DNA from: Guillardia theta CCMP2712
Lineage: Eukaryota; Protista; Cryptophyta
Assembly (NCBI RefSeq): GCF_000315625.1
Contig: NW_005434655.1
Location: 34,637-98,636, forward strand
Reading direction: 5' to 3'
Length of the DNA: 64,000 bases
Positions 1,205 through 36,326 of this stretch are shown here, piece after piece; the first letter of the stretch is position 1; every line of letters begins with the position of its first letter. The position numbers were made by a program, and so were the translations under genes. The notes beneath the pieces were generated by a model, which worked only from the letters and a program-made list of their open reading frames with translations, did not search any database and was not told the origin of the DNA.

Positions 1205-2014
1205 AAGGGCGTTGACGATGAGGAGGAGGAAGAAGACGAGGAATTTGCTAGAAAAGAAGAAGAGGAGGAGTTGTCCGCTGCATGGCAGCACAGCGAGGCA
1301 TCTGTTTCAGTCCCGTTCTTGGGTAGGGGAGCACGCAACGGTGCTGTCGGGGTCGCATGCGAGTCTGAGATGTTCACATCAGAAGAGTTGAGAGCATGAC
1401 GCGAAGGAATCATGTCCGACGAGTTCGAGTGTACCAGTGACTGATTCACAACTGTCGTCCTTGAAACGCCCTTGCCCTCAGTCTCCAGATTCATCGCGAC
1501 ACCATGGAGCCGGAAGCCCGGCCGGGTTGAGGAGACTGGGAAGAAGTCAGGAACGAGCATAGGAGAGAGACAGCAGAGCCTCACGAGGTTTCAGACGAAC
1601 TAGGAAAGGCTTCGCCCTCAGAGACGTTCGATGGAGAGTGGGAGAGAACTGAAGCCTTGCTATCTGCTCGTGTGTGATCCCCCCTCCACGCTGCGGACTC
1701 GCTGCCTCCTCCATCGCGTCCAATGCAGGTGATATCGGCAGTGAGGAGAGTGGGTCTTGGACAGCAGGAAGAGGAGGTGAGTGGAAAGAATACGAGGGGA
1801 GCTGTGAAGAACTGACTGAAGTTGTTGGAGGAGATGGAATAGAATCACTGTGTAGTTCCGTTTCAGGCGGCGGAGGAGGAAGGGGGAAAGAAGGGAGGGG
1901 AGGAGGGGGGGGGATGGAGGGAGGTGGCGGTGGCGGTGGGGGGGGAGGAGGAGGAGACTGTGAGCTTGCCAAAAGTGCGCATAGCAAGATCGCTATCGCA
2001 GCTCTCCTGACCAT
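1..2014 (-). CDS. Multi-exon secreted/surface protein with poly-Pro and poly-Ser tracts and a C-terminal coiled coil; 3' end runs off the window
   Basis: ATG at 2014 begins a signal-peptide-like MVRRAAIAILLCALLASSQ followed by poly-P. ORF pieces 1547-2158, 967-1584 and 369-932 can be joined by GT-AG introns (e.g. donor gtgagg at 1584) into an E/K-rich coiled coil. Confidence 0.6.
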
Positions 2015-2456
2015 CTTCAGCCCCCGACCATCGCGAACTCTGTAACGTCGTAGAACCGTCAGGTTGCAAAGGAATACTGCATGTAACGGTTTGGGGGCTC
2101 CGTCCGGTCCTCGGGGCCCGGTCCGAGGGTCCGGGGTCCCGCCGAATGGTGATGGCACTCAAACATCTAACACAATAGTAATCAAGTCCCCCTCGGATAT
2201 TAGCTACTCAAATGTTACAGGCAGCAAACCCATCATAATGACTGCCAATATATTTCTGGCGACGTGCACGTGGGTCATTTTGTAGTAAAGGGGGGGGCTG
2301 ACTCTTCCAGGTACGTAACGCATGTGGACCAGCTACGTACCAAGAGGAGACGTACCAAGATGCGAAAACGATCCATTTCGGTACTCAATCGTTAGTCAAA
2401 ATAGAGCTTTTGAACAAAATGTTTATACAGAACGGTATCGTCTAGTGATGACTTGT

Positions 2457-2469
2457 CGGAAGACTTCCG
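2457..2469. promoter_or_regulatory. Palindrome CGGAAGACTTCCG (CGG-N7-CCG), candidate Zn2Cys6 binding site
   Basis: Read directly. Inverted CGG half-sites about 650 bp upstream of the Zn2Cys6 gene, with a second copy at 2566. Confidence 0.4.
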
Positions 2470-2565
2470 GTAGCTGAATTACAGCAGTGACCACCTGCAA
2501 TATTTCAATATCCTTGTAACAATTTCAAAAGTACAGATTAATAATGAAATTCGATGTTTACTGAG

Positions 2566-2578
2566 CGGAATATTTCCG
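2566..2578. promoter_or_regulatory. Palindrome CGGAATATTTCCG (CGG-N7-CCG), candidate Zn2Cys6 binding site
   Basis: Read directly. Same CGGAA-N3-TTCCG architecture as the site at 2457. Confidence 0.4.
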
Positions 2579-3119
2579 TGGGTTTGATTGCGAGAGCTCA
2601 ATAGCTACGATCTTGTAGCCTTTGAAACGATGAGGTTTGAAAAGCTCCAACCTTGTAGCCTTTCAAGAATGTTTTTTTCTGAGACCAAGCAGCTGTATGA
2701 TCACGGCAAGTACCCCTTCAACTACACCAGTACCCACCCTCGATAAGAAGAATTGAATAACTACTACCCTTAGAATCAACTTCGAGGGGATGTACACCCC
2801 TCTAATCAACACATTCATTACCACACCCCTGTAGGTCTTGTTGCTTTAACCTCGATTTATTTCTTAAGCACCATAGTTCTCGATGACCACCCCCTTTTTT
2901 GACTACCCCACCTATCTCATTCTCATCTCAATCTCGTAGCCTCCCGTTCGCTTCTCTGCCCTCCCCGTTCTTGTCGTTTGATATAAGTTGGAGCTGTAAC
3001 CTCAAGTGACCACCGTGCTGCTCTCGTTTCCCTACGTCCTCTTCTTACAGCATCTTCCCTAGACCTTGCTCAGCAAACTAGCTTGCTCCACGCATAGCCC
3101 CTTACTCCGTTTTCTTTCC

Positions 3120-3998
3120 ATGTCTTTGCTTGTCGAGCCCCACTGGACCTCTGTCCAAGATCGCAGCGCAGGGGTGAAGCTTCCTCCCTTGAGGTCCTTG
3201 AGTGAACAGATTCCTTTCTTCTCGCCATCGGTGGCTCCTCAGTCTTTCCATCGTTCTCCCATACAGAGTGATCGGTTCTCCATGGCACATGTAACTCCTG
3301 TCGCAAGCTTACCAGAAAACTCATTGAACGTTCTCATGGGTGGATTCGGTTTCGAAGGGCAGCAAAACCAACAGATGCAGAATGTTGCCATGCAGAACAT
3401 CGTGAATCTCATTCAGCAGATCATCGTGCAGAAGAGTGGAGTGACTCAGCTCAAGCCTGTCAAGCCAAATCTCAACGTACTGGGAGCGCAGTATGCTGAA
3501 ATGGCTCACAAGACCTTCTCGCCGATCTCGCAGCCTTCTACTCAGGATGTCAAGCCATCACTGGGCAAGAGGTCGAAGCCCGAGGAAAAGCTCATTGAGG
3601 TCACGCCGGGTGGAGCAGAGCCCGCCAAGAGGAAACGTGTGTACACGAAAGCAGCTTGCGTGTCTTGCAGGTCTTCCCACCTTGCGTGCGATGATGGTCA
3701 GCCGTGCCGCAATTGCACCAAAAATGGCTCAAAGTGTGAGCGGGTTGAGCACACCAAGATTTACGTTCCTCCGACGCTGGATGAGGTACTGGGGACTCCC
3801 AGCGACGGCGAGTCCACAAAGTCGCCCTCGCCGGCTCCTTCAACTGATTCCAATGGAGCGCGGAAGTATGTCAAAGCTGCCTGCTCTTGTTGCAGGAAAT
3901 CACACCTGGCTTGCGACAATTATCGTCCCTGTAGGAACTGCGTTCGCCTTGAACTGACATGCGAAGAGATCAGAAGTCAACGCAGATCTAGAAGTTAA
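3120..3998 (+). CDS. Transcription factor with two tandem C-terminal Zn(II)2Cys6 binuclear clusters, intronless
   Basis: KAACVSCRSSHLACDDGQPCRNCTKNGSKC and KAACSCCRKSHLACDNYRPCRNCVRLELTC both fit CX2CX6CX5CX2CX6C. There is a basic NLS-like KRKR and a Q/N-rich N-terminal half. TATA-like TATAA at about 2982. Confidence 0.9.
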   Translation: MSLLVEPHWTSVQDRSAGVKLPPLRSLSEQIPFFSPSVAPQSFHRSPIQSDRFSMAHVTPVASLPENSLNVLMGGFGFEGQQNQQMQNVAMQNIVNLIQQIIVQKSGVTQLKPVKPNLNVLGAQYAEMAHKTFSPISQPSTQDVKPSLGKRSKPEEKLIEVTPGGAEPAKRKRVYTKAACVSCRSSHLACDDGQPCRNCTKNGSKCERVEHTKIYVPPTLDEVLGTPSDGESTKSPSPAPSTDSNGARKYVKAACSCCRKSHLACDNYRPCRNCVRLELTCEEIRSQRRSRS

Positions 3999-4353
3999 TT
4001 GTTAATTGTAGATACGTTGTTATTCATTTAAAAGATGTAATGAAAGTATTCTTTCTCGTATATTTTGACTCATTACTTCCACAAGGATTTTCATAGATCT
4101 TTAAATTCAACTGAAGTGTTGATTTCTCCCAATCAGCATACCTGAGGGCCTTGCGAGTCTGTGACCGTGAGTTTTGGACTGAGCGCACACTGTTATGATA
4201 AACTATCATCCAACTGGTGAGGATTCCTAAACTAACTTCCGAGTTTCATTACAGCCTGAGTAGCCCGCGATGATCCGGCGGCTGCTAGCCTTGAATGAGT
4301 TAAAGGTGAACCGAGTAGACTCAGTAGTGTGAGAAGCGAGAGTGTCCTCGTAC

Positions 4354-4381
4354 TGATTTTTAACTTAACTTTGAGTAAAAG
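4354..4381. repeat. 28-bp dispersed element TGATTTTTAACTTAACTTTGAGTAAAAG
   Basis: Exact copy at 40407-40434; variants at about 40510-40550 and inverted at 40309-40324. Confidence 0.85.
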
Positions 4382-4437
4382 ATTAGAGAAGTTTTCGTTG
4401 GCGCCAAAACTCAACTACGAGGTTGGCCATTGCTGCA

Positions 4438-5799
4438 ATGGCACCGCCGCAGTCCACCTCAAGGGAGCTGCCCACGGCGACCATGGTGAAGTTGCTAGAG
4501 GGGTTAGCACGGTCCTTCGAAGCTCGCTCCTTCTTGTTCCATGGTGAGAGGGAGGAGGTGGAAAATCGCATCCACAATTGCCTCGCACTGTTGATCACCA
4601 GCTTCTACAACCAGAGAACCGTCGTCTACCTCGGTTCCTCCATGCCGCTGGAGCAACGTTTGAATTATATGACTTGGTTTCGTTTCAGGGTGTGTTTGTT
4701 GTTGGTGATTCTCGATTATGATTACAAGCTTCTTTCTCTTCCCACTAAGCGTCCCTTGTCGCATGGAGAAATCAAATCTCCAGCAGATTTCTCCTCAGTC
4801 GAATTTCTGGAGTATTTTGGCTTCAACAAGGAGCAATTCCATCAACTATTAGCATCTCTCGAGGACGACAAAGGTCAGCGCATGATGGCCAACGGTTCTC
4901 CTTCTGTGCTTCACCTTGGCAAGACGGGCCACAAGTATCGGATTTCAGCAGACAAAGCAATGATGATATTCTTGCGCAGATCTGCCGTACCTTGCCGCTG
5001 GTCGGACTTACAAGAAATCATGGGTGGCTCAAGGACCGTTTTGTCTGACACATTCTCCGCTATGACAGACATGCTGTACAATAAGTATTCCCCTCTCGTA
5101 TGTGATATCAACTCCTGGAAAGGAGATCTTGCTCAATTTTCCAGCCATGTCCACTCGCTGGGCCTATCGCGCAAAGGGGTCGTGATGTTCTTGGATCAGC
5201 ACTACCAGCAGACGGATCTTCCAGCAGGACACAGCTGCGGCATCCTGGATCGCAGCGACTCGTCACAGCCATGGACGCCCTCAGGGCTGCACTACTTCGC
5301 TGGAGTTCTACCGAACGGGATCAGCCTCATTTGGGGACCGTGGAAGGGGCCGATGCAGGAGATGACGACGCTGCTGGACGCGCAAGTCTGTGCGAAACTC
5401 GAGCAGAGCGCGGAGGAGGCTGGAGTGGACTTCTGTGCGTGCTCACAGAGCTCGAACCTTCTCTCGGCTCGGCTGTATCCCATGAATGAAGCTTGTGCTA
5501 CCGAGATGGAAACGGAGAGTCAGAGACCTTTGGATTCTCTCATGTCACGATTCCGCCTATTGGCCAAAGATACCTTCGGGGAAGCGGTCAAGATCTGGAG
5601 CACCCTCAATCATCGTTGCAATATGCGTCTGGGCGCACAGAAGCTGGAAAGAGCTTTCGTTGTACAGCTCCTCATCTTCAATATCCGATCCATTTTCAGC
5701 AGAGACCAAATCACCGAAGAGCAGGAAAAGGCAGATTTGTTTCTCAGGATATCCTTGGAAGATTATCTGTCGAAAATCCGAGGCTGCCATGGTAATTGA
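4438..5799 (+). CDS. PIF/Harbinger-superfamily (DDE_Tnp_4/HARBI1-like) transposase-derived protein, catalytic residues degenerate, intronless
   Basis: Colinear family motifs: FGFNKEQF, IFLRRSAVPCRWSDL, VMFLD, GLHYFAGVLPNGI..WGP, MSRFR....DTFG, LLIFN and C-terminal SLEDYL. No TIRs seen. Confidence 0.75.
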   Translation: MAPPQSTSRELPTATMVKLLEGLARSFEARSFLFHGEREEVENRIHNCLALLITSFYNQRTVVYLGSSMPLEQRLNYMTWFRFRVCLLLVILDYDYKLLSLPTKRPLSHGEIKSPADFSSVEFLEYFGFNKEQFHQLLASLEDDKGQRMMANGSPSVLHLGKTGHKYRISADKAMMIFLRRSAVPCRWSDLQEIMGGSRTVLSDTFSAMTDMLYNKYSPLVCDINSWKGDLAQFSSHVHSLGLSRKGVVMFLDQHYQQTDLPAGHSCGILDRSDSSQPWTPSGLHYFAGVLPNGISLIWGPWKGPMQEMTTLLDAQVCAKLEQSAEEAGVDFCACSQSSNLLSARLYPMNEACATEMETESQRPLDSLMSRFRLLAKDTFGEAVKIWSTLNHRCNMRLGAQKLERAFVVQLLIFNIRSIFSRDQITEEQEKADLFLRISLEDYLSKIRGCHGN

Positions 5800-6188
5800 A
5801 TAGAATGACATGATTGCTCACAACGCGCTGCCTCGAGTCACTGAGTCCAACTCCATCACTGAGTCAGGCCCATGACAGTACGGTGATTGTCAGCCATCGT
5901 ACGGTAGCAGAACCTCAGTCGAGTGACTCACAGGCTGGCCGCAGCTCCGTGCCGCCGTCCGACCGTCGGACCGTCCGACGGGCCTGCCACTGGCCGGGCC
6001 CTGTGCATGCCCCGGGGCCGCCGGGGGTATCCCGGAGTCACTGCCTGATGACTCGGACTAGGTATGGTTCGAGACCCGGTGACCGTACCGTACGTGAGTG
6101 ACTCTGTGAGTCGGACCGTTTATTAGTCCCGGGCCGGGCCACCAAATTTCTCTTGTAACGGATCTGAAACGACCGAGCACTTTGCTCG

Positions 6189-6862
<674 letters not shown>

Positions 6863-6920
6863 ATGCGACAGGAAGGGAGCAGAGGAAGCAAAGTTAACGA
6901 TTTGTATGTATACGCCTACG

Positions 6921-9900
6921 CTACTGCCTTGCCGCCATGAGCTCCTGCTCGGCACTTTCTTTCCATCCTTGAACCATCCTCCGTGCCTCCTCGGCGGCCC
7001 TTCTCGCCATCTCCTGCTCATCCTCGCCTTGAGCCCCACGGTCATTCTCGTTCAAATCCTGCGCTGAGATGCCGTTTTCCTGCAACTCTCGGAGGACGTC
7101 CTCGATCTCATGCTCGACGCTCTTGTACATGTCGTCGAAGTACGTCATCGCCTCCTCCTTCGCTCTCACAAACTCCTGCAGCGAGCGCTCTACCTCGGCA
7201 TGGTCCACCTCCTTCACCTCCAGCATCCTTCTGATCTGATGATGGAAGTTGACCAAATGGTTCGCAGATTCCGCCATGGCAAGAAACTTCTGCTTCTCCT
7301 GCTCCTCCTGCTCCTCCACCATCATCACTTCCTCTTCCTCCTCGTCTTCTTCCTCCTCCTGGACGTTGAGAAAGTTGAACCTGTGTTTCTGCTCCTCACT
7401 TCGTTGCCATGGCTGTTCATATGCATCCTTCTCGTGCACATTTTCATCCACCCGCTGCCCTCTGATCCAGCGCTCGTGCTCAGCCCGCCTGCGCTCTCCC
7501 TGCCAGTCATCTGCAATCAGCTCCTCTTGCCTTGTACGTCCCTCGAGCCACTCCTCTACCCCATCCTCCTTGTGTTGGGCATGCGCACCATCACTGAAAC
7601 CCTTATCTCCTCCTTGCATCTCCTCCTCCTCCTCCTCTTCCTCCTCTGCGCGCCGAGGCTGCTGGGAGCTGGACGGCATCGTGCTTAAGGCGAGGGCGAT
7701 CTCCCGCTCTTGCGCTTCCACGTCAGCAAGCGCAGTGGAGGACAACACCAGCTCTGCCGACTTCTCCGCAACTTCAGCCTCCTGCACCACCCGCGCTGCC
7801 TCCTCCTTGGCTGCCTGGAGGGCATCAAGAGCAAGGAGGACGTCCTGGTCGGAGGTGTCTTCACTCTCGATGACTCGCCGGAGATGCTCCTCCATCTTCA
7901 TGTACTTCTCCGTCGCCTCCAACACTCTCATCCCCGCATCTCGCGCGAGCTGCTCGGCCGCAAGCTGCTCTTCCAAGACTGCGTTACCCACGTTGTAGAC
8001 ATGAAGCTTGACTGACGTGAGGACCATGTCTGCGTGCTCATCTAGCTCTCCCTCCTCCTTCACCTCTCCTCCTGCCTTCCTGCCATCCTCCCGCTCCTCC
8101 TGCTCCTCCCGCTCCTCCCGCTCCTCCCGCTCCTCCCGCTCCTCCCGCTCCTCCCGCTCCTTCTCCTCTGCACGTGCCTCCTGCCGCTCGTCGCCAGCAA
8201 GAGCCATGCGTTCCGCGTCCTCGTCGTCATCGCCAAGGAGCGAGGCTTCTTGAATGATGTCGTCAATGTGACTAGTTTCGAGGTCGAGGTAGGAGGTGGC
8301 GTTGTCGATCATTACTGAGAAGGCCTCGTATGTTGTCTTGTACTCTTCCATCATCCTCTTCAGCTCTTCCTCCTCCACGTCGCTCGCGCTCATCGCAGCC
8401 TTCAGCATCGCGTGCTGCTGCATCGCCATCATTCCCAGCGCCTCCATGCGCTCCATGGTCTGGTTGTCTTCCCAGTCGTAGGGGGTGCTGGCGGTGGGAG
8501 GGGCGAGGGCGGTGACGTCCTTCCTCGAGGTGCCCGCGCGTGCAGCCTTGAGGAGAGCGTCGGAGACTTGACGGATGAGAGAGCGAGGGGGAGGCGGAGG
8601 AGGGGGGGCAAGAGACCTCTGCGATTTTCTCCTCCTCCTTCGCTTTTCCCTGGCTCGCTGGCGGGACCCTCGGAACACCTTCTGCAGCTTGATCACCGCT
8701 GCCTCCAGCTGCTGGGCCTCCGCGTTGACCGCCAGCTTCTCGTGCAGGAGGGCGAGGGCAGCAGGAGAGACCTCGTTGCCCTCCAGCTCGATGATGCTCA
8801 GCTTGCACTCACGTCCCAACATGTCGCGCATGTGCATGACGCCCTTGTCGGAGATGTTGTTCCCAGCCACCGACAGCAGCGTCAGGCTTCTGTTCATCGC
8901 CCCCTTCATCCCCTGGCTGAACGCCAGCGCCACCTGCATGAAGCCTGAGTCTCCCAGCATGTTCCGGTCCAGCAGCAGCTCTCGCAGCCCGACGCTTCTC
9001 TCGAGCCCCTTGCGCAGGTAGGCAGCCCCGTCAGCTCCCAGCAGGTTGTGGCTCAGGTCCAGCCGGGTCAGGCGCGAGTTGTCCACCAGCGCCCTCGCCA
9101 GCACTCGCACGCCCGCCTGCCCGATGGCGTTGCCGCTCAGCTCCAAGCAGCTCAAGCGCGAGCTGGGGGAGGAGCCGAGGAGGTCGAGGAAGGCAGGCAT
9201 GCCCTGATTGCCGATGACGTTGCCGTTAAGACGAAGAGTCTCTATCCCCTCGTTCCCTTTCATCCCCTCCGCTAGCGCGGTCGAGCCTTCCGGTCCGATC
9301 CAGTTGTCGCAGAGGGAGAGGAGGGAGAGCGACTGGTTTCTGCTCAGCATCGCTCCTAACGCCGTTGCCCCGACGTCGCCGAGGTGGTTGCCGTCTAAGA
9401 CAAGTCTCGTGAGCTTGTTGACCACATGCTCCTGCTGTAGGTGCGAGAGATCCGACGAGGCGATGCTCGACGGCTTGCTGTCCAGGATCAGCTCAAACTC
9501 CCCGTCCTTGCCTATCCTGCACTCTTCCACCGTCTTGCTGTCCTCCCATACGACAGAGCAGGAGGACGATGCCTCATCAGCCCCGTGCTTGACCTCCATG
9601 ACTTGCCCTCTGCTTCCCTTCGCTCCTCCGCTCCTCCTCACCATCTGACCCTCCCGCGCGTGCACATGTGCGTTGACGAATCTCTTCAACTCCGCCACCT
9701 CCTCCTTGGAGGGGCTCCAGACCGACAGCAGCGCTATGGAGCTCTCAGAGCCGGGCGAGGAGGAGGAGGAGAATGTTGAGGTCGCCCCCGAGTAGTCCCA
9801 CATGACCTCCACTGCCTCCTCCTCCACCCTCGTGATCACTCCCGGTCCGCTCAACGTCTTGGCCAGCAGCTGCTCCAGCTCCTCGCCCTCCTCTCTCACT

Positions 9901-12900
9901 ATGACGGGCAGTCCCACCCTCGGCTCCACCTCCCGCCCGACCACCAACCTCGCGCCCTCACCGCTCGAGCTGCGGGAGCGAAAGACCTGGTGCAGGCCCA
10001 GCACGAGCACGAAGAGCCCGTAGTTGTCGAGCTGCCCCCCAGCTCCGCAGAAGAATCGAGTCCTCACTCGCACGTCCTCCTCCGTCAGGTCGATCCCGGT
10101 CTCCACCACCAGCTCGCACAGTCTTTCCAAGGGAACCGAGCCTCCGTTGACGCGCAGAGCTTCTCGGAACGCTTCCTCCATTACCCCCTGCGCGTCTCCG
10201 ACTTTGATGGCGCTCTTCATCAGCCGCCGCTGAGCCCGCAGGCTCAGCAACGTCTGAGCAGGAGCCTTCGACTCATCGAGCTCGTGAGTCCCCTCTCCCT
10301 CTTCCTCGAACCTGCTGAACGAGAAGCCCAGCACAAGCACAGCAGGCGTCGCTTCCTCCCCGTCCTTGGTCACTCTGACGGCACCGGGAAGGGACAAGGG
10401 CAACTCAGTCAGGCCGACCTCATACATCTCCCGTAGGAGCTCTAGCGGTAGCGAGGCGGCTGCGACAACAGCCTCCTCCTCCTTCATCTTTGCGGCATCG
10501 CGAACCACCAGGTCGATCTCTCCGCCATCCTCCTTGAGGGGGAAGCGGAAAGACTCGCCCCACCAGAAGTCGCTCGTCTCCGAGATCCGCCCAGTCTCTA
10601 GCTCCAGCTCCACACCCAGCAGACTCACGAACAGCTTCCTGGGCTGCAGAGAGAACAGGTTGATCGCCCGCCTGACCTCCAGCTGGAAGAAGCTTCCCCT
10701 GCCCTCGCAGTAGGAGAAGGAAAGCTCCACCTCGCTCCTCCTACCCTGCTGCTCGTTGGCGTCTGCTGTCGCCATCACGAGCTTCCCGTCCGCATCCTCC
10801 AGCTGGAACCAGTGAGAGACGCGCTTCTCCGAGAGCAGCTGGGCCAGGGAGATGGGAACTCTGACGACTCCCAGCAGGTCAGACTTGCTCAGCCAGTCCC
10901 AGTCGTACACCTCTACCACCAACGTCTGCTCCGACCAGACCCCGCGCGTCAGGTCCTCGAACTCGAAGCTTTCCCGCCACTCCGGGCTCAACGTCTTGCG
11001 CTTGACCTGCGTCTTTTTCTTCTGTCCGTTGAGGTCCAGAGTCACGAAGGGGTCGGAGGAGCCCGAGAGGTCGGCAGCTGGGAGGTTCCTGGCTCGAACG
11101 ACTTGTACCGTCAACTTGGAGGCCACAAAGTCCTCGGCCTCCCTCACGCCCTCGCGCTCGCCTCTCCTCCTCAGCTTCGATCGCGTGTAGTCAGCGAACG
11201 AGGGCCACTGGTCGACGGTGACCCCCACGCTGTTCTTGACCTTGAGGTAGAATCGCAGCAGGTCGAGGACGTGCTTGTCCTCCGACTGTTGCGCAAACTT
11301 GTACGCCGACATGCTCTTGCAGTTGGTCGCCATGGGGTCCGCGTCTCTGCCCAGCAGGTATCTCACCACGGCTCTTCGGCGATGCTTCGCCGCAACCATG
11401 AGGGGCGTGACTCCGTCGCGGCTGCTGAAGTCGACGGAGTGGCAGGAGCTGAGAAGCTGCTTCGCCACCTCTTCTTGCCCGTTGCGAATGGCCTCTAGGA
11501 TCGCGTTCTTTCCCGTCACGCTCTCCCTCAGTATCTCCTGCCCGCACATCTTGCAGCTCAGATGTACGTAGCCATGCACATCCTGCCCCTCCTGCCCCTC
11601 CTGCCCCTCCTGCCCCTCCTGCCCCTCCTGCTCTCCTCCTTCATCTCGCAGCGTGCACCAAGCCTGCACATCGGAGATGCCAGACAAGGGGAGGGAGGAG
11701 GAGGCAAGAAGAAAGCTTCGGTCCCGAGCGGCACAGACGACCTGCAAGGAGATGCAGCAGGGAAGCAGGTGGCGGATGCCCTCGCAGGAGACGATGAGGT
11801 TGGGGGACCCCTGCCGTTGCTCCTTCGTCACCTCGTACTCGCCCACCATGACTGACTTGACGAGCAGCCTCAGGAAGACGCGAGGCGCTTGACCCTGATC
11901 AGCGCTGACAGAACCTGCTTTCTCTCCCTCCCCTTCTCCTTTCCCTTGGTCTTCTCCTCCTTCGCTCTCTCCTTCGAGAAATGCTATCAGGTCAAACAAA
12001 CTTCTGTGCAGGAACATTCGCGTCACTTTCACTTGTAGCGTTGGCTCTGCGAGGGTCATCTCTCGGATCAGGTACTCAACCACCTTGATCTTGCCTGACC
12101 GCACGGCCATGTCAAGAACCGAACTGTCATGCTTGTCTTGCACCGACATGTGTGCTCCCTGCTCTCTGAGGAACCTCACTGACAGCAACTTCCCAGCCAT
12201 GGCAGCTCGGAGCAACGCTGTCCGCCTGTGCTCGTCTCTGTCTTCCATGCTGGCGCCAGACCGCAAGGCATACTTCATCACATCGAGAGCCTCGTGCTCC
12301 GCCGCGGTCATCAACAGAGTGTCGCCCTTGACCAGTATCGTCGCAGCAGACTCGCCGACATGCTGGAGGAAGGAGGTCACGACTGACACCTTGTCCTCTC
12401 TGATGGCTGACTGCAAGACATGGTGGCAGGGGCAGGGGAGGAGGAGCATCGCCGCATGTCGCAGAGACTCTCCTTCCATCTTGTTGCGGGACAGGTCGAG
12501 ACATCGCAACTCACCGCAAGTGCTCAAGGCGACACTCAAGGCCTCCAGCCCTGCCTCCCCGATGCTGTTGTCTTGGATGATCACCGCCGTTACTCGATCC
12601 GCGTGCGTCAACCCACCAGCGATGCAGCAGACGTCCTTGTCCTCCATCGAGTTCTCCCTCAGAGCCACGACCCTCACTCCCTGGACCAGCTCCCTCAGCT
12701 CTTCCGCGTTGACCTGCAAGCCGTTGGCAAGGAGGAAGGAGACGAGAGGGTCGGCCATCAGCTCCCGCAGACTTCCTTGAGCCGACTGCTTGTCGCAGAC
12801 GGAGACGCACATGGAGTCTTGCTCAGACAGCAGCTCTCTCGGCAGCACTGCCAACATCGGAGACTCGCGAAGCAGCAGAGTCCGCTGCCTCATCCCGTGC

Positions 12901-13544
12901 ATCGCCGACGGCTCGATGGAGGAGGAGGCTGACAGCTGCACGTGCATCTTTCTTCTGATCGAGTCAAGCTTCTCTCGCGGTATCGCCACTCGTCCCTCCC
13001 CGATCTCACTCATCACCATCAACGTCTTTGCCGACAAGGTCCACGGGGGAAGCAGCGCAGCCTTCCGTCCGTCCTCTCCCTGCCTGCTTCCGGGTCGCAC
13101 CCTCCTCCCATACCCCCAGAACTGAGCTTCTGCGCGCTCCTTGTGCTTCAGCGTCAGCTCGAACTTGCTCATCGCCTTTTGGTCCTTGAGTGTCATGTGC
13201 AGCGTCTGCGGCAGCTCCAGGCTCTCCGGGCTCCTCCATTCCTCCCCGCTGCTCCATCCCTGCCCGTTCTGTCGTCCTGCTCGACTGGCGCCAGCAGAGC
13301 GAGGAAGAAAGTTCAAGGCCAACCTACGGGGCCCTCCATCTGCTGTTGACACTGCTCGCCGTAGCGTCCCTCCGAGATCTCTTGGTTCATTCCACCCAAC
13401 GCGCTTCATGCTCTTCCTACTGCCGCCTGCTGATATCTTCATGATGCCTGACCTCTCCCCTCCTCCATCCTCGCGGGTCGGGGGATACATGTCCTCAAAC
13501 ATCGCAGAAAGGTCCCTCCCTCCCTCCTTGTCTCTACCTCGCAT
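6921..13544 (-). CDS. 2207-aa intronless multidomain protein: RNI-like LRRs, ankyrin repeats, about three C2 domains, MIB/HERC2-like modules, IQ motif and acidic coiled coil
   Basis: LRRs (LxxLxLxxNxIG). ANK (RTALLRAAMAG; GVTPLMVAAKH). C2 (VVRARNLPAADLSGSSDPFV...VEVYDWDWLSKSDLLG). IQ (IKLQKVFRG). Single open frame of 6.6 kb. Confidence 0.9.
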   Translation of the reverse strand: MRGRDKEGGRDLSAMFEDMYPPTREDGGGERSGIMKISAGGSRKSMKRVGWNEPRDLGGTLRRAVSTADGGPRRLALNFLPRSAGASRAGRQNGQGWSSGEEWRSPESLELPQTLHMTLKDQKAMSKFELTLKHKERAEAQFWGYGRRVRPGSRQGEDGRKAALLPPWTLSAKTLMVMSEIGEGRVAIPREKLDSIRRKMHVQLSASSSIEPSAMHGMRQRTLLLRESPMLAVLPRELLSEQDSMCVSVCDKQSAQGSLRELMADPLVSFLLANGLQVNAEELRELVQGVRVVALRENSMEDKDVCCIAGGLTHADRVTAVIIQDNSIGEAGLEALSVALSTCGELRCLDLSRNKMEGESLRHAAMLLLPCPCHHVLQSAIREDKVSVVTSFLQHVGESAATILVKGDTLLMTAAEHEALDVMKYALRSGASMEDRDEHRRTALLRAAMAGKLLSVRFLREQGAHMSVQDKHDSSVLDMAVRSGKIKVVEYLIREMTLAEPTLQVKVTRMFLHRSLFDLIAFLEGESEGGEDQGKGEGEGEKAGSVSADQGQAPRVFLRLLVKSVMVGEYEVTKEQRQGSPNLIVSCEGIRHLLPCCISLQVVCAARDRSFLLASSSLPLSGISDVQAWCTLRDEGGEQEGQEGQEGQEGQEGQDVHGYVHLSCKMCGQEILRESVTGKNAILEAIRNGQEEVAKQLLSSCHSVDFSSRDGVTPLMVAAKHRRRAVVRYLLGRDADPMATNCKSMSAYKFAQQSEDKHVLDLLRFYLKVKNSVGVTVDQWPSFADYTRSKLRRRGEREGVREAEDFVASKLTVQVVRARNLPAADLSGSSDPFVTLDLNGQKKKTQVKRKTLSPEWRESFEFEDLTRGVWSEQTLVVEVYDWDWLSKSDLLGVVRVPISLAQLLSEKRVSHWFQLEDADGKLVMATADANEQQGRRSEVELSFSYCEGRGSFFQLEVRRAINLFSLQPRKLFVSLLGVELELETGRISETSDFWWGESFRFPLKEDGGEIDLVVRDAAKMKEEEAVVAAASLPLELLREMYEVGLTELPLSLPGAVRVTKDGEEATPAVLVLGFSFSRFEEEGEGTHELDESKAPAQTLLSLRAQRRLMKSAIKVGDAQGVMEEAFREALRVNGGSVPLERLCELVVETGIDLTEEDVRVRTRFFCGAGGQLDNYGLFVLVLGLHQVFRSRSSSGEGARLVVGREVEPRVGLPVIVREEGEELEQLLAKTLSGPGVITRVEEEAVEVMWDYSGATSTFSSSSSPGSESSIALLSVWSPSKEEVAELKRFVNAHVHAREGQMVRRSGGAKGSRGQVMEVKHGADEASSSCSVVWEDSKTVEECRIGKDGEFELILDSKPSSIASSDLSHLQQEHVVNKLTRLVLDGNHLGDVGATALGAMLSRNQSLSLLSLCDNWIGPEGSTALAEGMKGNEGIETLRLNGNVIGNQGMPAFLDLLGSSPSSRLSCLELSGNAIGQAGVRVLARALVDNSRLTRLDLSHNLLGADGAAYLRKGLERSVGLRELLLDRNMLGDSGFMQVALAFSQGMKGAMNRSLTLLSVAGNNISDKGVMHMRDMLGRECKLSIIELEGNEVSPAALALLHEKLAVNAEAQQLEAAVIKLQKVFRGSRQRAREKRRRRRKSQRSLAPPPPPPPRSLIRQVSDALLKAARAGTSRKDVTALAPPTASTPYDWEDNQTMERMEALGMMAMQQHAMLKAAMSASDVEEEELKRMMEEYKTTYEAFSVMIDNATSYLDLETSHIDDIIQEASLLGDDDEDAERMALAGDERQEARAEEKEREEREEREEREEREEREEQEEREDGRKAGGEVKEEGELDEHADMVLTSVKLHVYNVGNAVLEEQLAAEQLARDAGMRVLEATEKYMKMEEHLRRVIESEDTSDQDVLLALDALQAAKEEAARVVQEAEVAEKSAELVLSSTALADVEAQEREIALALSTMPSSSQQPRRAEEEEEEEEEMQGGDKGFSDGAHAQHKEDGVEEWLEGRTRQEELIADDWQGERRRAEHERWIRGQRVDENVHEKDAYEQPWQRSEEQKHRFNFLNVQEEEEDEEEEEVMMVEEQEEQEKQKFLAMAESANHLVNFHHQIRRMLEVKEVDHAEVERSLQEFVRAKEEAMTYFDDMYKSVEHEIEDVLRELQENGISAQDLNENDRGAQGEDEQEMARRAAEEARRMVQGWKESAEQELMAARQ

Positions 13545-34422: not shown

Positions 34423-36326
34423 TTACTCCATCATCTTGCTTCCTACTCTTGATCCTCAGTACGTCCGATCTCTTAGCCCCGACGTGCTCTCGAGAAGAGC
34501 CTTCACCTTGTCCAGCTTCAGCATCTTGCTGATCGCTGCCCGGCTCTTCCCGTACAACTTAGGCCGCGACCGGCCCTGTCTCACTCCCGGGGCGAGGGGC
34601 GATGGAGAGGCTGAGGGATCACCGGGGAAGAGAAGGTGTGGGGAGGTCTGGGAGGAGAGGAAGGAGCAGACGAGGCAGTCGGGAACATCGCAGGGGCAGG
34701 GAGGAGAGAGCGTAGCGTGTATATGCAAGCTAACAGGAGCTTCTCTGTAACTCAAATAATGACAAGCTCCTTTTTACATCTTGCGGGGGGGTACTACCTC
34801 ACCGAGTGCCTCTGAGTTCAAGTGGCGCACTACTAGGACAGTTACTGGTTACTACCTGAAACCTTGTCATCATAGCATCACAAACTTGAGATATCAGGAG
34901 AGTCACAATGATTCAGACTGTTAGCGAACGCATTTGTGCAACGGGCTGGAGAGATCGGACACCCGGCTACTTCAACAAACTTGACTCATCCTCATATAAC
35001 GCTGTACGGAAACCAGACAGTAGCATACTTCGGATCGGAGGATGTTTTACTCACCTTGCCACGCGGCGATCAGTGAGTGAACTTTCAAAATTGGAAAATC
35101 GAAGAATGCTTGTGACAAGTAGAGCGGCGGGATCTGAATACCTTTCTCGATGCAGAAAGTTTTCATGCTTTCGAGTTTTTGTTTCCACACGAGAGTTTGC
35201 ATTCTTTCCGCGGCTAAATCCGTCTCGGCCCACATTTTCTTTTTTCCTCATGTTCCAAATCTCTCTCAGCTTCAATCACTCTGAGTCTCTGATATTCCAA
35301 ATCTCTCTCAGCCATTCTCAGTCTTTCGCTCCATTCCTGTTGACCGCGACCCTCAGCCTGCGGTCCAGCTGTAGTCCAGAATCATACCTAGCACGTTTCC
35401 GGGACCCTCCTCCATGTCCCTTCCCCATGGAGGGTGAAGGCGGTTCAGGAGAAGATCACAGCGACCAGGTTTCCGACCCATCATCTTCACCTGAAGAGGA
35501 ACTGGAGGCAGAGCAATACCGAGCCATCAGGCTCATGTCTTCATCACATTGGCAAAGGCTGCTACGAAATCAAACGAAGCACGAGCCCTACTGTCAACCG
35601 TCTTCATGGCACATCGAGACCGAATCTTGTTTCTCTGCATCTTTCTCGGCTATCATGCCATTTGCTTCTGGTCGTATTCGTCTTCAAGGCACCTGCAAAC
35701 AATGGGTCTTGATCCGTGGCATCACGATAAATGTTTTCTTTGTCTCTGCAGTTTCCAAACAGCTTGCGTGTTGGAGTGCCCATCATCGCAGTGACAGTCA
35801 TCACACGACGTTTGAAGCCATCCTGGTCGGGTTGACCTTTGAAGCTCATACGACCGGGCACATTCGCCTGTGCATTTGAAGGCACCTCACAGCTTTCGGA
35901 ACGTTCAGTCTGTCCTGGCGAAATTTTGCCAGGCTTTCTGAGAGCTGAGGTAGTTGCGATGGATCAAGTAGCTCGCCAGCTATGGGATCCTCCGATGCTA
36001 CGCGCTTGAAGCATTTCTACCTTCTTACTCGCTATAGATCTCATTGCTCCTCCCCCCTTTCCCTTACTGAGATACTCCTCCTCCTCCTCCTGCTAGCTCC
36101 TCCTCCTCCTGCTAGCTCCTCCTCCTCCTGCTAGCTCCTCCTCCTCCTGCTAGCTCCTCCTTCTCTGACTCTTTCATGATACCTCCCGGAGTCCTTTCCT
36201 TCCAGTAAGTCTTTGGTAGCTCCTCCCTCTCTCGTTAGCTCCTACCCGGCTCTCGGTGACTCTCCGGAGTCTGATAGCTCCTCTCAAAAACTCTTGGGCC
36301 TTCCGCTCTCTCGCATATGCCATCAT
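34423..36326 (-). CDS. Hypothetical multi-exon protein with a short coiled coil
   Basis: Protein-like exons (SEDPIAGELLDPSQLPQLSESL; ANVPGRMSFKG; EWSERLRMAERDLE; MWAETDLAAERMQ; KSRAAISKMLKLDK) bounded by GT/AG. No recognisable family; both ends are approximate. Confidence 0.4.
36078..36153. repeat. 19-bp tandem repeat (CTCCTCCTCCTCCTGCTAG) x4, probably intronic
   Basis: Read directly. Confidence 0.9.

Follow-up and report, generated by a model that had tools for sequence, protein, structure and literature searches.

In Arabidopsis, two host genes derived from PIF/Harbinger transposases, ALP1 and HDP1, encode non-catalytic subunits of chromatin complexes, in which each is joined by a protein (ALP2 and HDP2, respectively) that derives from the second open reading frame (ORF) of such a transposon (PMC4671723, PMC7282668, PMC5339849). 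ALP1 has DGA in place of the catalytic DDE (Asp-Asp-Glu) triad, and a single triad mutation drastically reduces transposition of the Ping element (PMC4671723). In vertebrates, the domesticated Harbinger transposase HARBI1 interacts with NAIF1, the product of an unlinked gene that also derives from a second ORF (PMC4671723, PMC9710019). In insects, the PIF-like genes of the pairs DPLG7-DPM7, APLG1-APM1 and LPLG2-LPM2 adjoin a gene for a DNA-binding (MADF) protein, both members of a pair having come from the same transposon insertion; one such pair lies 97 bp apart and is annotated as dicistronic (PMC9710019). Here we consider two neighboring genes of the cryptophyte alga Guillardia theta CCMP2712, termed ORF-A and ORF-B, which occupy positions 3120 to 5799 of a 64,000-nucleotide stretch of contig NW_005434655.1 (G000:C19:34637-98636, from an 87-Mb assembly in 669 contigs). 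This stretch is referred to as the window, and coordinates given without a contig refer to it.

We suggest that ORF-B is, in all likelihood, a domesticated, non-catalytic PIF/Harbinger transposase. Like ALP1 and HDP1, it is a transposase-derived host gene with a substituted DDE triad, present in single copy, free of flanking inverted repeats and with its N-terminal helix-turn-helix (HTH) region retained. Unlike them, it would stem from an independent event among cryptophyte transposases and has so far been seen in Guillardia and Hanusia only; its origin is likewise independent of that of HARBI1. The arrangement also recalls the insect pairs, with the difference that ORF-A is a host Zn2Cys6 gene, of a family far older than the ORF-B insertion.

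Descent and catalytic residues of ORF-B

ORF-B (4438..5799, + strand) runs from an ATG at 4438 to a TGA at 5797-5799 and encodes 453 amino acids; as the initial annotation had stated, direct reading finds neither stops nor frameshifts over these 453 codons. Domain and structure databases are silent on the protein. A Pfam scan returned no match even at E<=10, a sequence search of the PDB returned one stray match (E 0.73), and a PDB profile search built on 56 sequences found nothing. In contrast, a six-frame search of the genome aligned residues 21-445 (425 amino acids) with 454-amino-acid open frames on contigs C16 and C13 at 37-38% identity (E 1e-81), and these frames score 67.6 bits on the Pfam model PF13359, DDE_Tnp_4 (cut-off 24.8), or 64.8 bits when scored as proteins. 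A profile search with ORF-B gathered 254 relatives at E<=1e-3. Since ORF-B itself is silent in Pfam, its DDE_Tnp_4 homology is shown only by way of these paralogues: the Harbinger-type identity first assigned to it stands through them, whereas a direct Pfam match is lacking. On sequence grounds, we conclude that ORF-B belongs by descent to the PIF/Harbinger (DDE_Tnp_4) superfamily, and we describe it as a DDE_Tnp_4-derived transposase without catalytic residues.

A word search identified the orthologue of ORF-B in Hanusia phi as P0001, a protein of 486 amino acids with 52% identity, 95% coverage and no Pfam domain, and the same search also yielded a transposase fragment from Rhodomonas salina that carries PF13359. 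Besides P0001 and P0020, the public model of ORF-B, an exhaustive search gave two short fragments at 50% and 48% identity, and all near-full-length matches were at most 42% identical. In a quick tree search, ORF-B and P0001 formed a clade with a support of 100 in the Shimodaira-Hasegawa-like approximate likelihood ratio test (SH-aLRT), on a stem of 0.88 substitutions per site, nested with a support of 98 among transposases of Guillardia and Rhodomonas. The two terminal branches, 0.35 and 0.51, are similar to those of their neighbors. Such branch lengths point to a burst of change before Guillardia and Hanusia separated, followed by what looks like ordinary constraint.

The same clade has parted with the catalytic motifs of the superfamily. 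Of roughly 50 full-length relatives aligned for comparison, nearly every one has retained DG on beta1 (the first strand of the core), the YxGxxxxHG block, HD, GDxxY and (V/I)E, with an intact DDE triad. In ORF-B the DG has become DQ (with D253 kept) and in P0001 ER, while the YxGxxxxHG block is absent from both; HD is replaced by QE (containing E308) in ORF-B and DG in P0001, GDxxY by SQSSN (Q337) and VGRTH, and (V/I)E by AK (K377) and LQ. The triad positions thus read D253, Q337 and K377 in ORF-B and E, G and Q in its orthologue. Two of the three DDE residues have been lost in the former and all three in the latter, with different replacements, and the loss of most catalytic motifs listed in the initial annotation is borne out against this larger set of relatives. 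HARBI1, unlike ORF-B, keeps its catalytic motifs.

The predicted structure is consistent with this descent. An AlphaFold2 model of ORF-B (mean predicted local distance difference test, pLDDT, 84; predicted TM-score, pTM, 0.76) begins with a long N-terminal helical hairpin (residues 13-103; 4474..4746, + strand), recognized from the secondary structure of the model and also present in active transposases; in fold searches this hairpin matched generic helical hairpins only. It is followed on the same strand by the HTH/linker region (residues 111-245; 4768..5172), the best-conserved part of the dead lineage, and by the RNase H-like former catalytic core (residues 246-431; 5173..5730), delimited by the motif comparison and by fold matches. 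Judged by RNase H topology, D253 on beta1 (5194-5196), Q337 directly after beta4 (5446-5448) and K377 on the long helix (5566-5568) would occupy the canonical triad positions of the model; E308, in the QE that replaces HD, is encoded at 5359-5361. Every match over the C-terminal two-thirds of the model in the VIA structure search was a DDE enzyme, with Z scores of 9.0-9.2 for Tn5 transposase (232-235 residues), 8.4-8.6 for ISCth4 and 7.1-7.9 for retroviral integrase cores, although the search with the whole model was dominated by trivial helical-hairpin matches. The RNase H/DDE-like fold expected of a Harbinger derivative is therefore found in the prediction (Tn5, Z 9.2). The structure supports transposase descent, and the sequence is the main evidence for it.

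Evidence for domestication

Live relatives of the element that gave rise to ORF-B offer a direct comparison. Two loci, C13:53602-56814 (L024:3602-6814) and C16:254932-258144 (L023:2932-6144), share a 3213-bp segment that is 99.9% identical and carries an intact DDE_Tnp_4 transposase together with a convergent second ORF of 359 amino acids; a different Harbinger family with the same two-ORF layout is present on C206. We regard the C13/C16 segment as a recently active Harbinger. A search of its ends detected no inverted repeats, and hence the segment may not be the complete element. An internally deleted copy of the segment is found on C127, and the C16 region seems to have an allelic duplicate in C276. 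The live Harbingers of C13, C16 and C206 resemble ORF-B in protein sequence over the whole length (37-43% identity) and in the hairpin, HTH and core architecture, and differ from it in having kept DG, HD, GDxxY and (V/I)E, in their convergent second ORF and in their near-identical copies.

ORF-B shows none of these signs of mobility. The 87-Mb assembly holds one 100% match to it, and the next best match in its own genome is 38% identical. A search for inverted repeats that pair 2000-4437 with 5800-7000 across the gene found none, no second-ORF similarity or remnant was found beside it, and no similarity to the active C13/C16 element was found at the DNA level. Copy number and the search for terminal inverted repeats, both proposed as checks when the locus was first described, thus agree in pointing to a single gene outside any recognizable transposon. 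Its open frame is also hard to attribute to chance. In a neutral simulation that modeled substitutions only, the frame was still open in 2.7% of runs at 85% amino acid identity and in none of 300 runs at 73% or at 53%, whereas ORF-B is open at 52% identity to its orthologue and 37% to the active copies, which places the open frame beyond chance expectation. The distribution of conservation along the protein has changed as well. Between ORF-B and P0001, the HTH region is 62% identical and the core 44%; between the live C13 transposase and that of Rhodomonas, the corresponding values are 54% and 68%. At the level of protein identity, these values show that in the dead lineage the N-terminal HTH region has replaced the catalytic core as the most strongly constrained part. 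Taken together, the orthologue, the tree, the single copy, the open frame and the shift in constraint argue for a recruited, non-catalytic protein that has retained an N-terminal binding function.

It could be objected that ORF-B is nothing more than a Harbinger copy, decaying or non-autonomous, whose frame happens to be open still, and that the Hanusia protein is another copy of the same dead family. The genome does harbor live Harbinger families, as the C13/C16 segment and 16 DDE_Tnp_4 matches attest. However, a decaying copy would not be expected under neutrality to be open at 37-52% identity, and neither its single copy and missing inverted repeats, nor a long stem shared with P0001 and followed by ordinary terminal branches, nor an HTH region better conserved than the core sits well with such an origin. 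The window itself supplies an internal contrast to the intact ORF-B: a genuine Harbinger remnant at 34993-35993, in which second-ORF pieces (35113-35993, - strand; 56-59% identical to the live second ORF of C206) are broken by stops and frameshifts, and in which a 22-amino-acid scrap of a transposase C-terminus is found at 34993-35058 (+ strand). We consider the decaying-copy explanation to be already largely refuted, and very improbable. Slightly more improbable still, in our estimation, is that ORF-B acts as a nuclease through alternative acidic residues, D253, E308 and D378. One triad Asp is indeed kept, and Glu or Asp residues stand at or beside former motif positions, but Hanusia has E, G and G/Q at the places of these three residues, none of which is conserved, and the Asp after beta4 and the Glu of the long helix have been replaced by Gln and Lys; the response of Ping to a single triad mutation (PMC4671723) also speaks against residual activity.

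Several points do weigh against domestication, or limit how far it can be taken. The gene is known in only one other species, Hanusia phi, and so the recruitment would be young or narrowly distributed. Selection on ORF-B is read indirectly, from the simulation and from regional protein conservation, and the public model of the gene consists of its C-terminal 204 amino acids only. Foldseek E-values to DDE enzymes in the PDB are weak (the best, to Mos1, is 0.014), and the VIA matches, with Z scores of about 9, are no more than moderate. D253, E308 and D378 could in principle supply carboxylates, although, as noted, Hanusia conserves none of them. Finally, a function as a regulatory adaptor is proposed by analogy only. 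We nevertheless favor recruitment of a dead transposase, and the independent algal domestication put forward in the initial annotation is supported by the dead orthologue, the single copy, the cryptophyte clade and the DDE-like fold.

ORF-A, its neighborhood and the candidate partners

ORF-A (3120..3998, + strand) runs from an ATG at 3120 to a TAA at 3996-3998 and, by direct reading, encodes 292 amino acids with two Zn2Cys6 binuclear clusters; it is a gene of the transcription-factor type, conserved in cryptophytes. Pfam Zn_clus matches it in two stretches (E 1.1e-11, 45 bits; cut-off 21). Both clusters read CX2CX6CX5CX2CX6C, the first spanning C180-C206 (3657..3737, + strand) and the second C255-C281 (3882..3962, + strand), and all 12 of their cysteines are invariant in seven of seven aligned homologues. 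Two basic clusters are present, KRSK and KRKR, the latter resembling a nuclear localization signal at residues 170-173; the simple pattern scan used to find them detected no basic cluster in ORF-B and was uninformative beyond the KRKR of ORF-A. The Hanusia phi orthologue, P0005, has 294 amino acids and is 72-73% identical over its full length, an ENA protein is 93% identical, and Baffinella frigidus and metagenomes contain homologues that are 34-57% identical. We take ORF-A to be a genuine host gene, older than ORF-B. The Zn_clus family is strongly expanded in the Guillardia theta genome, with at least 143 domain matches (from 150 of 265 candidates scored), many of them in tandem or inverted arrays or in gene pairs; one array, at C73:286329-303734, consists of eight near-identical two-cluster genes at a spacing of about 2.4 kb.

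The two genes are co-oriented and both intact, as the initial annotation had described them, and are separated by 439 bp (rather than 440). The spacer (3999..4437, + strand) is AT-richer, with a GC content of 0.41, and when read for spliced-leader acceptor sites it offers candidates only, in the form of GTGAG donor-like and polypyrimidine-CAG acceptor-like sites. The surroundings, previously called intron-rich, are not uniformly so. Directly downstream of ORF-B, the next gene (6921-13544, - strand) is one unbroken ORF of 2207 amino acids, in which ankyrin-like, C2-like and leucine-rich-repeat-like stretches and acidic low-complexity tracts can be recognized by eye; intronless genes are therefore not unusual around ORF-A and ORF-B. 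The possibility that the two ORFs are exons of a single gene was rejected, for the Hanusia proteins are separate and each begins at the matching Met. The public models of both genes look truncated and are corrected by the present analysis. That of ORF-A (P0004) comprises the last 238 amino acids only, and the N-terminal 72 amino acids missing from it are conserved in Hanusia, making the start at 3120 preferable; that of ORF-B (P0020, 204 amino acids) covers residues 250-453 only. In both cases the alignment with the Hanusia orthologue begins at the upstream Met codon, 3120 for ORF-A and 4438 for ORF-B.

Described Harbinger domestications pair the transposase with a second-ORF protein (PMC9710019, PMC7282668, PMC5339849), and a candidate of this kind exists elsewhere in the genome. 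A search with the second ORF of C206 gave several matches, of which three, on C14, C48 and C78, are open frames without a nearby transposase. The one on C48, GUITHDRAFT_140748 (C48:401408-402514, + strand; L063:3408-4514), encodes 368 amino acids and is a solo second-ORF derivative: it shares the N-terminal domain of about 110 amino acids of the live Guillardia Harbinger second ORFs (37-38% identity), and no transposase lies within 7 kb of it. Its orthologue in Hanusia phi, P0172 (65% identity, 346 amino acids), and an ENA protein 89% identical to it give it a phyletic pattern that matches that of ORF-B. None of the Guillardia Harbinger second ORFs scanned (L024:5743-6822, - strand; L026:3251-4504, + strand; and those of L062, L063 and L066) matched any Pfam domain, be it Myb, SANT, MADF or another, and in this they differ from the ALP and HDP partners. 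The conserved domain of GUITHDRAFT_140748 is modeled at a pLDDT above 90 (residues 30-140) and aligns to all 104 residues of the DNA-binding domain of Schizosaccharomyces pombe Sap1 (Z 7.8, root-mean-square deviation 3.9), the next unrelated match having a Z of 5.7; with Foldseek the probability of the Sap1 match is 0.94 and its E-value 0.16, and a plant telomeric Myb domain reaches a Z of 5.5. The N-terminal domain of these second ORFs is thus predicted to resemble the Sap1 DNA-binding domain.

Which of the two, this unlinked gene or ORF-A, might serve ORF-B is a matter on which we can be only tentative. That GUITHDRAFT_140748 is the partner would parallel HARBI1/NAIF1, ALP1/ALP2 and HDP1/HDP2, and we hold it to be a real possibility, if one that falls short of being probable. 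The phyletic pattern that it has in common with ORF-B rests on one other species, it may come from another element family or insertion than ORF-B, it has no Pfam domain and only a moderate Sap1-like match, and two further solo second-ORF-like frames, those on C14 and C78, have no detected Hanusia orthologue. The alternative, the pairing raised in the initial annotation, is that ORF-B and ORF-A form a two-gene unit, possibly co-transcribed, in which ORF-A would contribute sequence-specific DNA binding and nuclear import in place of the second protein of the transposon. Their common orientation, their short distance and the basic clusters found in ORF-A alone are in keeping with this, and insects offer a precedent for domesticated pairs that are adjacent, even dicistronic (PMC9710019). 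Orthologues of both genes exist in Hanusia; their EukProt serials (P058610 and P058613, in EP00960) are three apart and their source headers share a parent number (763932-Hanusia_phi.AAC.5 and 763932-Hanusia_phi.AAC.8), while a third Hanusia protein bears a different one, 323741. As EukProt puts its own identifier in front of the header that a protein came with and assigns serials by position in the file (EukProt preprint), the headers, by themselves, hint that the two orthologues come from one assembled sequence, as its ORFs 5 and 8, and hence that the linkage is conserved and perhaps that a single transcript carries both.

This meaning of the headers is itself inferred, however, and linkage of the two genes in a sister genus may be plain synteny. 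Of about 17 Harbinger-like loci, 2 have a Zn_clus gene at a distance of less than 3 kb, where roughly 0.1-0.2 would be expected, a rough count that is suggestive only. One of the two is the ORF-A/ORF-B locus and the other lies at C74:297-301 kb. At the latter (C74:296700-301200; L037:2700-7160), a DDE_Tnp_4 fragment (L037:5590-6036, - strand) and an ORF of 255 amino acids are found between two Zn2Cys6 genes (L037:2998-3579, - strand, and 6623-7159, + strand) that are inverted, face outward and belong to an inverted duplication. Against a functional pairing it must also be said that the family of ORF-A is old and large and predates ORF-B, that nothing Harbinger-like was found near the ORF-A homologues (39-58% identity) at 12 metagenome loci, although these homologues may be paralogues in distant cryptophytes and the downstream flank reaches 1.7 kb or more at only 6 of the 12, and that a DNA-binding neighbor is a selected observation, being the reason why the locus was flagged. 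Guillardia theta and Hanusia phi use spliced-leader trans-splicing, and widespread operons are not evident in cryptophytes (PMC5619915). With a canonical candidate available in GUITHDRAFT_140748, a unit of ORF-B and ORF-A seems to us rather doubtful. The fuller proposition, that a dead Harbinger transposase exchanged or supplemented its own partner for a host Zn2Cys6 factor 439 bp upstream and that the linked module has been conserved between Guillardia and Hanusia, is in our view equally unlikely. We therefore rate GUITHDRAFT_140748 the likelier partner, noting that the two are not mutually exclusive.

Proposed role and significance

We posit that a PIF/Harbinger transposon gene was recruited in the ancestor shared by Guillardia and Hanusia (Geminigeraceae) and became ORF-B, which would have retained the hairpin, the HTH region and the RNase H-like core architecture. 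The protein presumably no longer cuts DNA. By analogy with known systems, its N-terminal half may bind DNA, a sequence-specific DNA-binding partner or both, turning the former enzyme into a non-catalytic adaptor, and it may act in transcriptional or chromatin regulation as the independently domesticated ALP1, HDP1 and HARBI1 do. Its partner could be the unlinked and conventional GUITHDRAFT_140748, on C48, or the adjacent ORF-A. Full-text searches of the literature turned up no article about Harbinger domestication in Guillardia.

Recruitment of Harbinger transposases as chromatin or transcription factors that lack catalysis has happened repeatedly, in plants, vertebrates and insects, and ORF-B would extend this pattern to the cryptophyte algae, which form an independent lineage of eukaryotes. 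Guillardia theta may be a useful system in which to study such recruitment, since live relatives of the ancestral element persist in the same genome as ORF-B, as does a candidate co-domesticated second-ORF gene whose predicted fold is Sap1-like rather than Myb. If the pairing with ORF-A were to prove true, ORF-B would be the first domesticated Harbinger nuclease to be joined to a DNA-binding protein of non-transposon origin, and the possibly conserved linkage with a Zn2Cys6 gene offers an opportunity to test how an inactivated nuclease may gain DNA-targeting partners.

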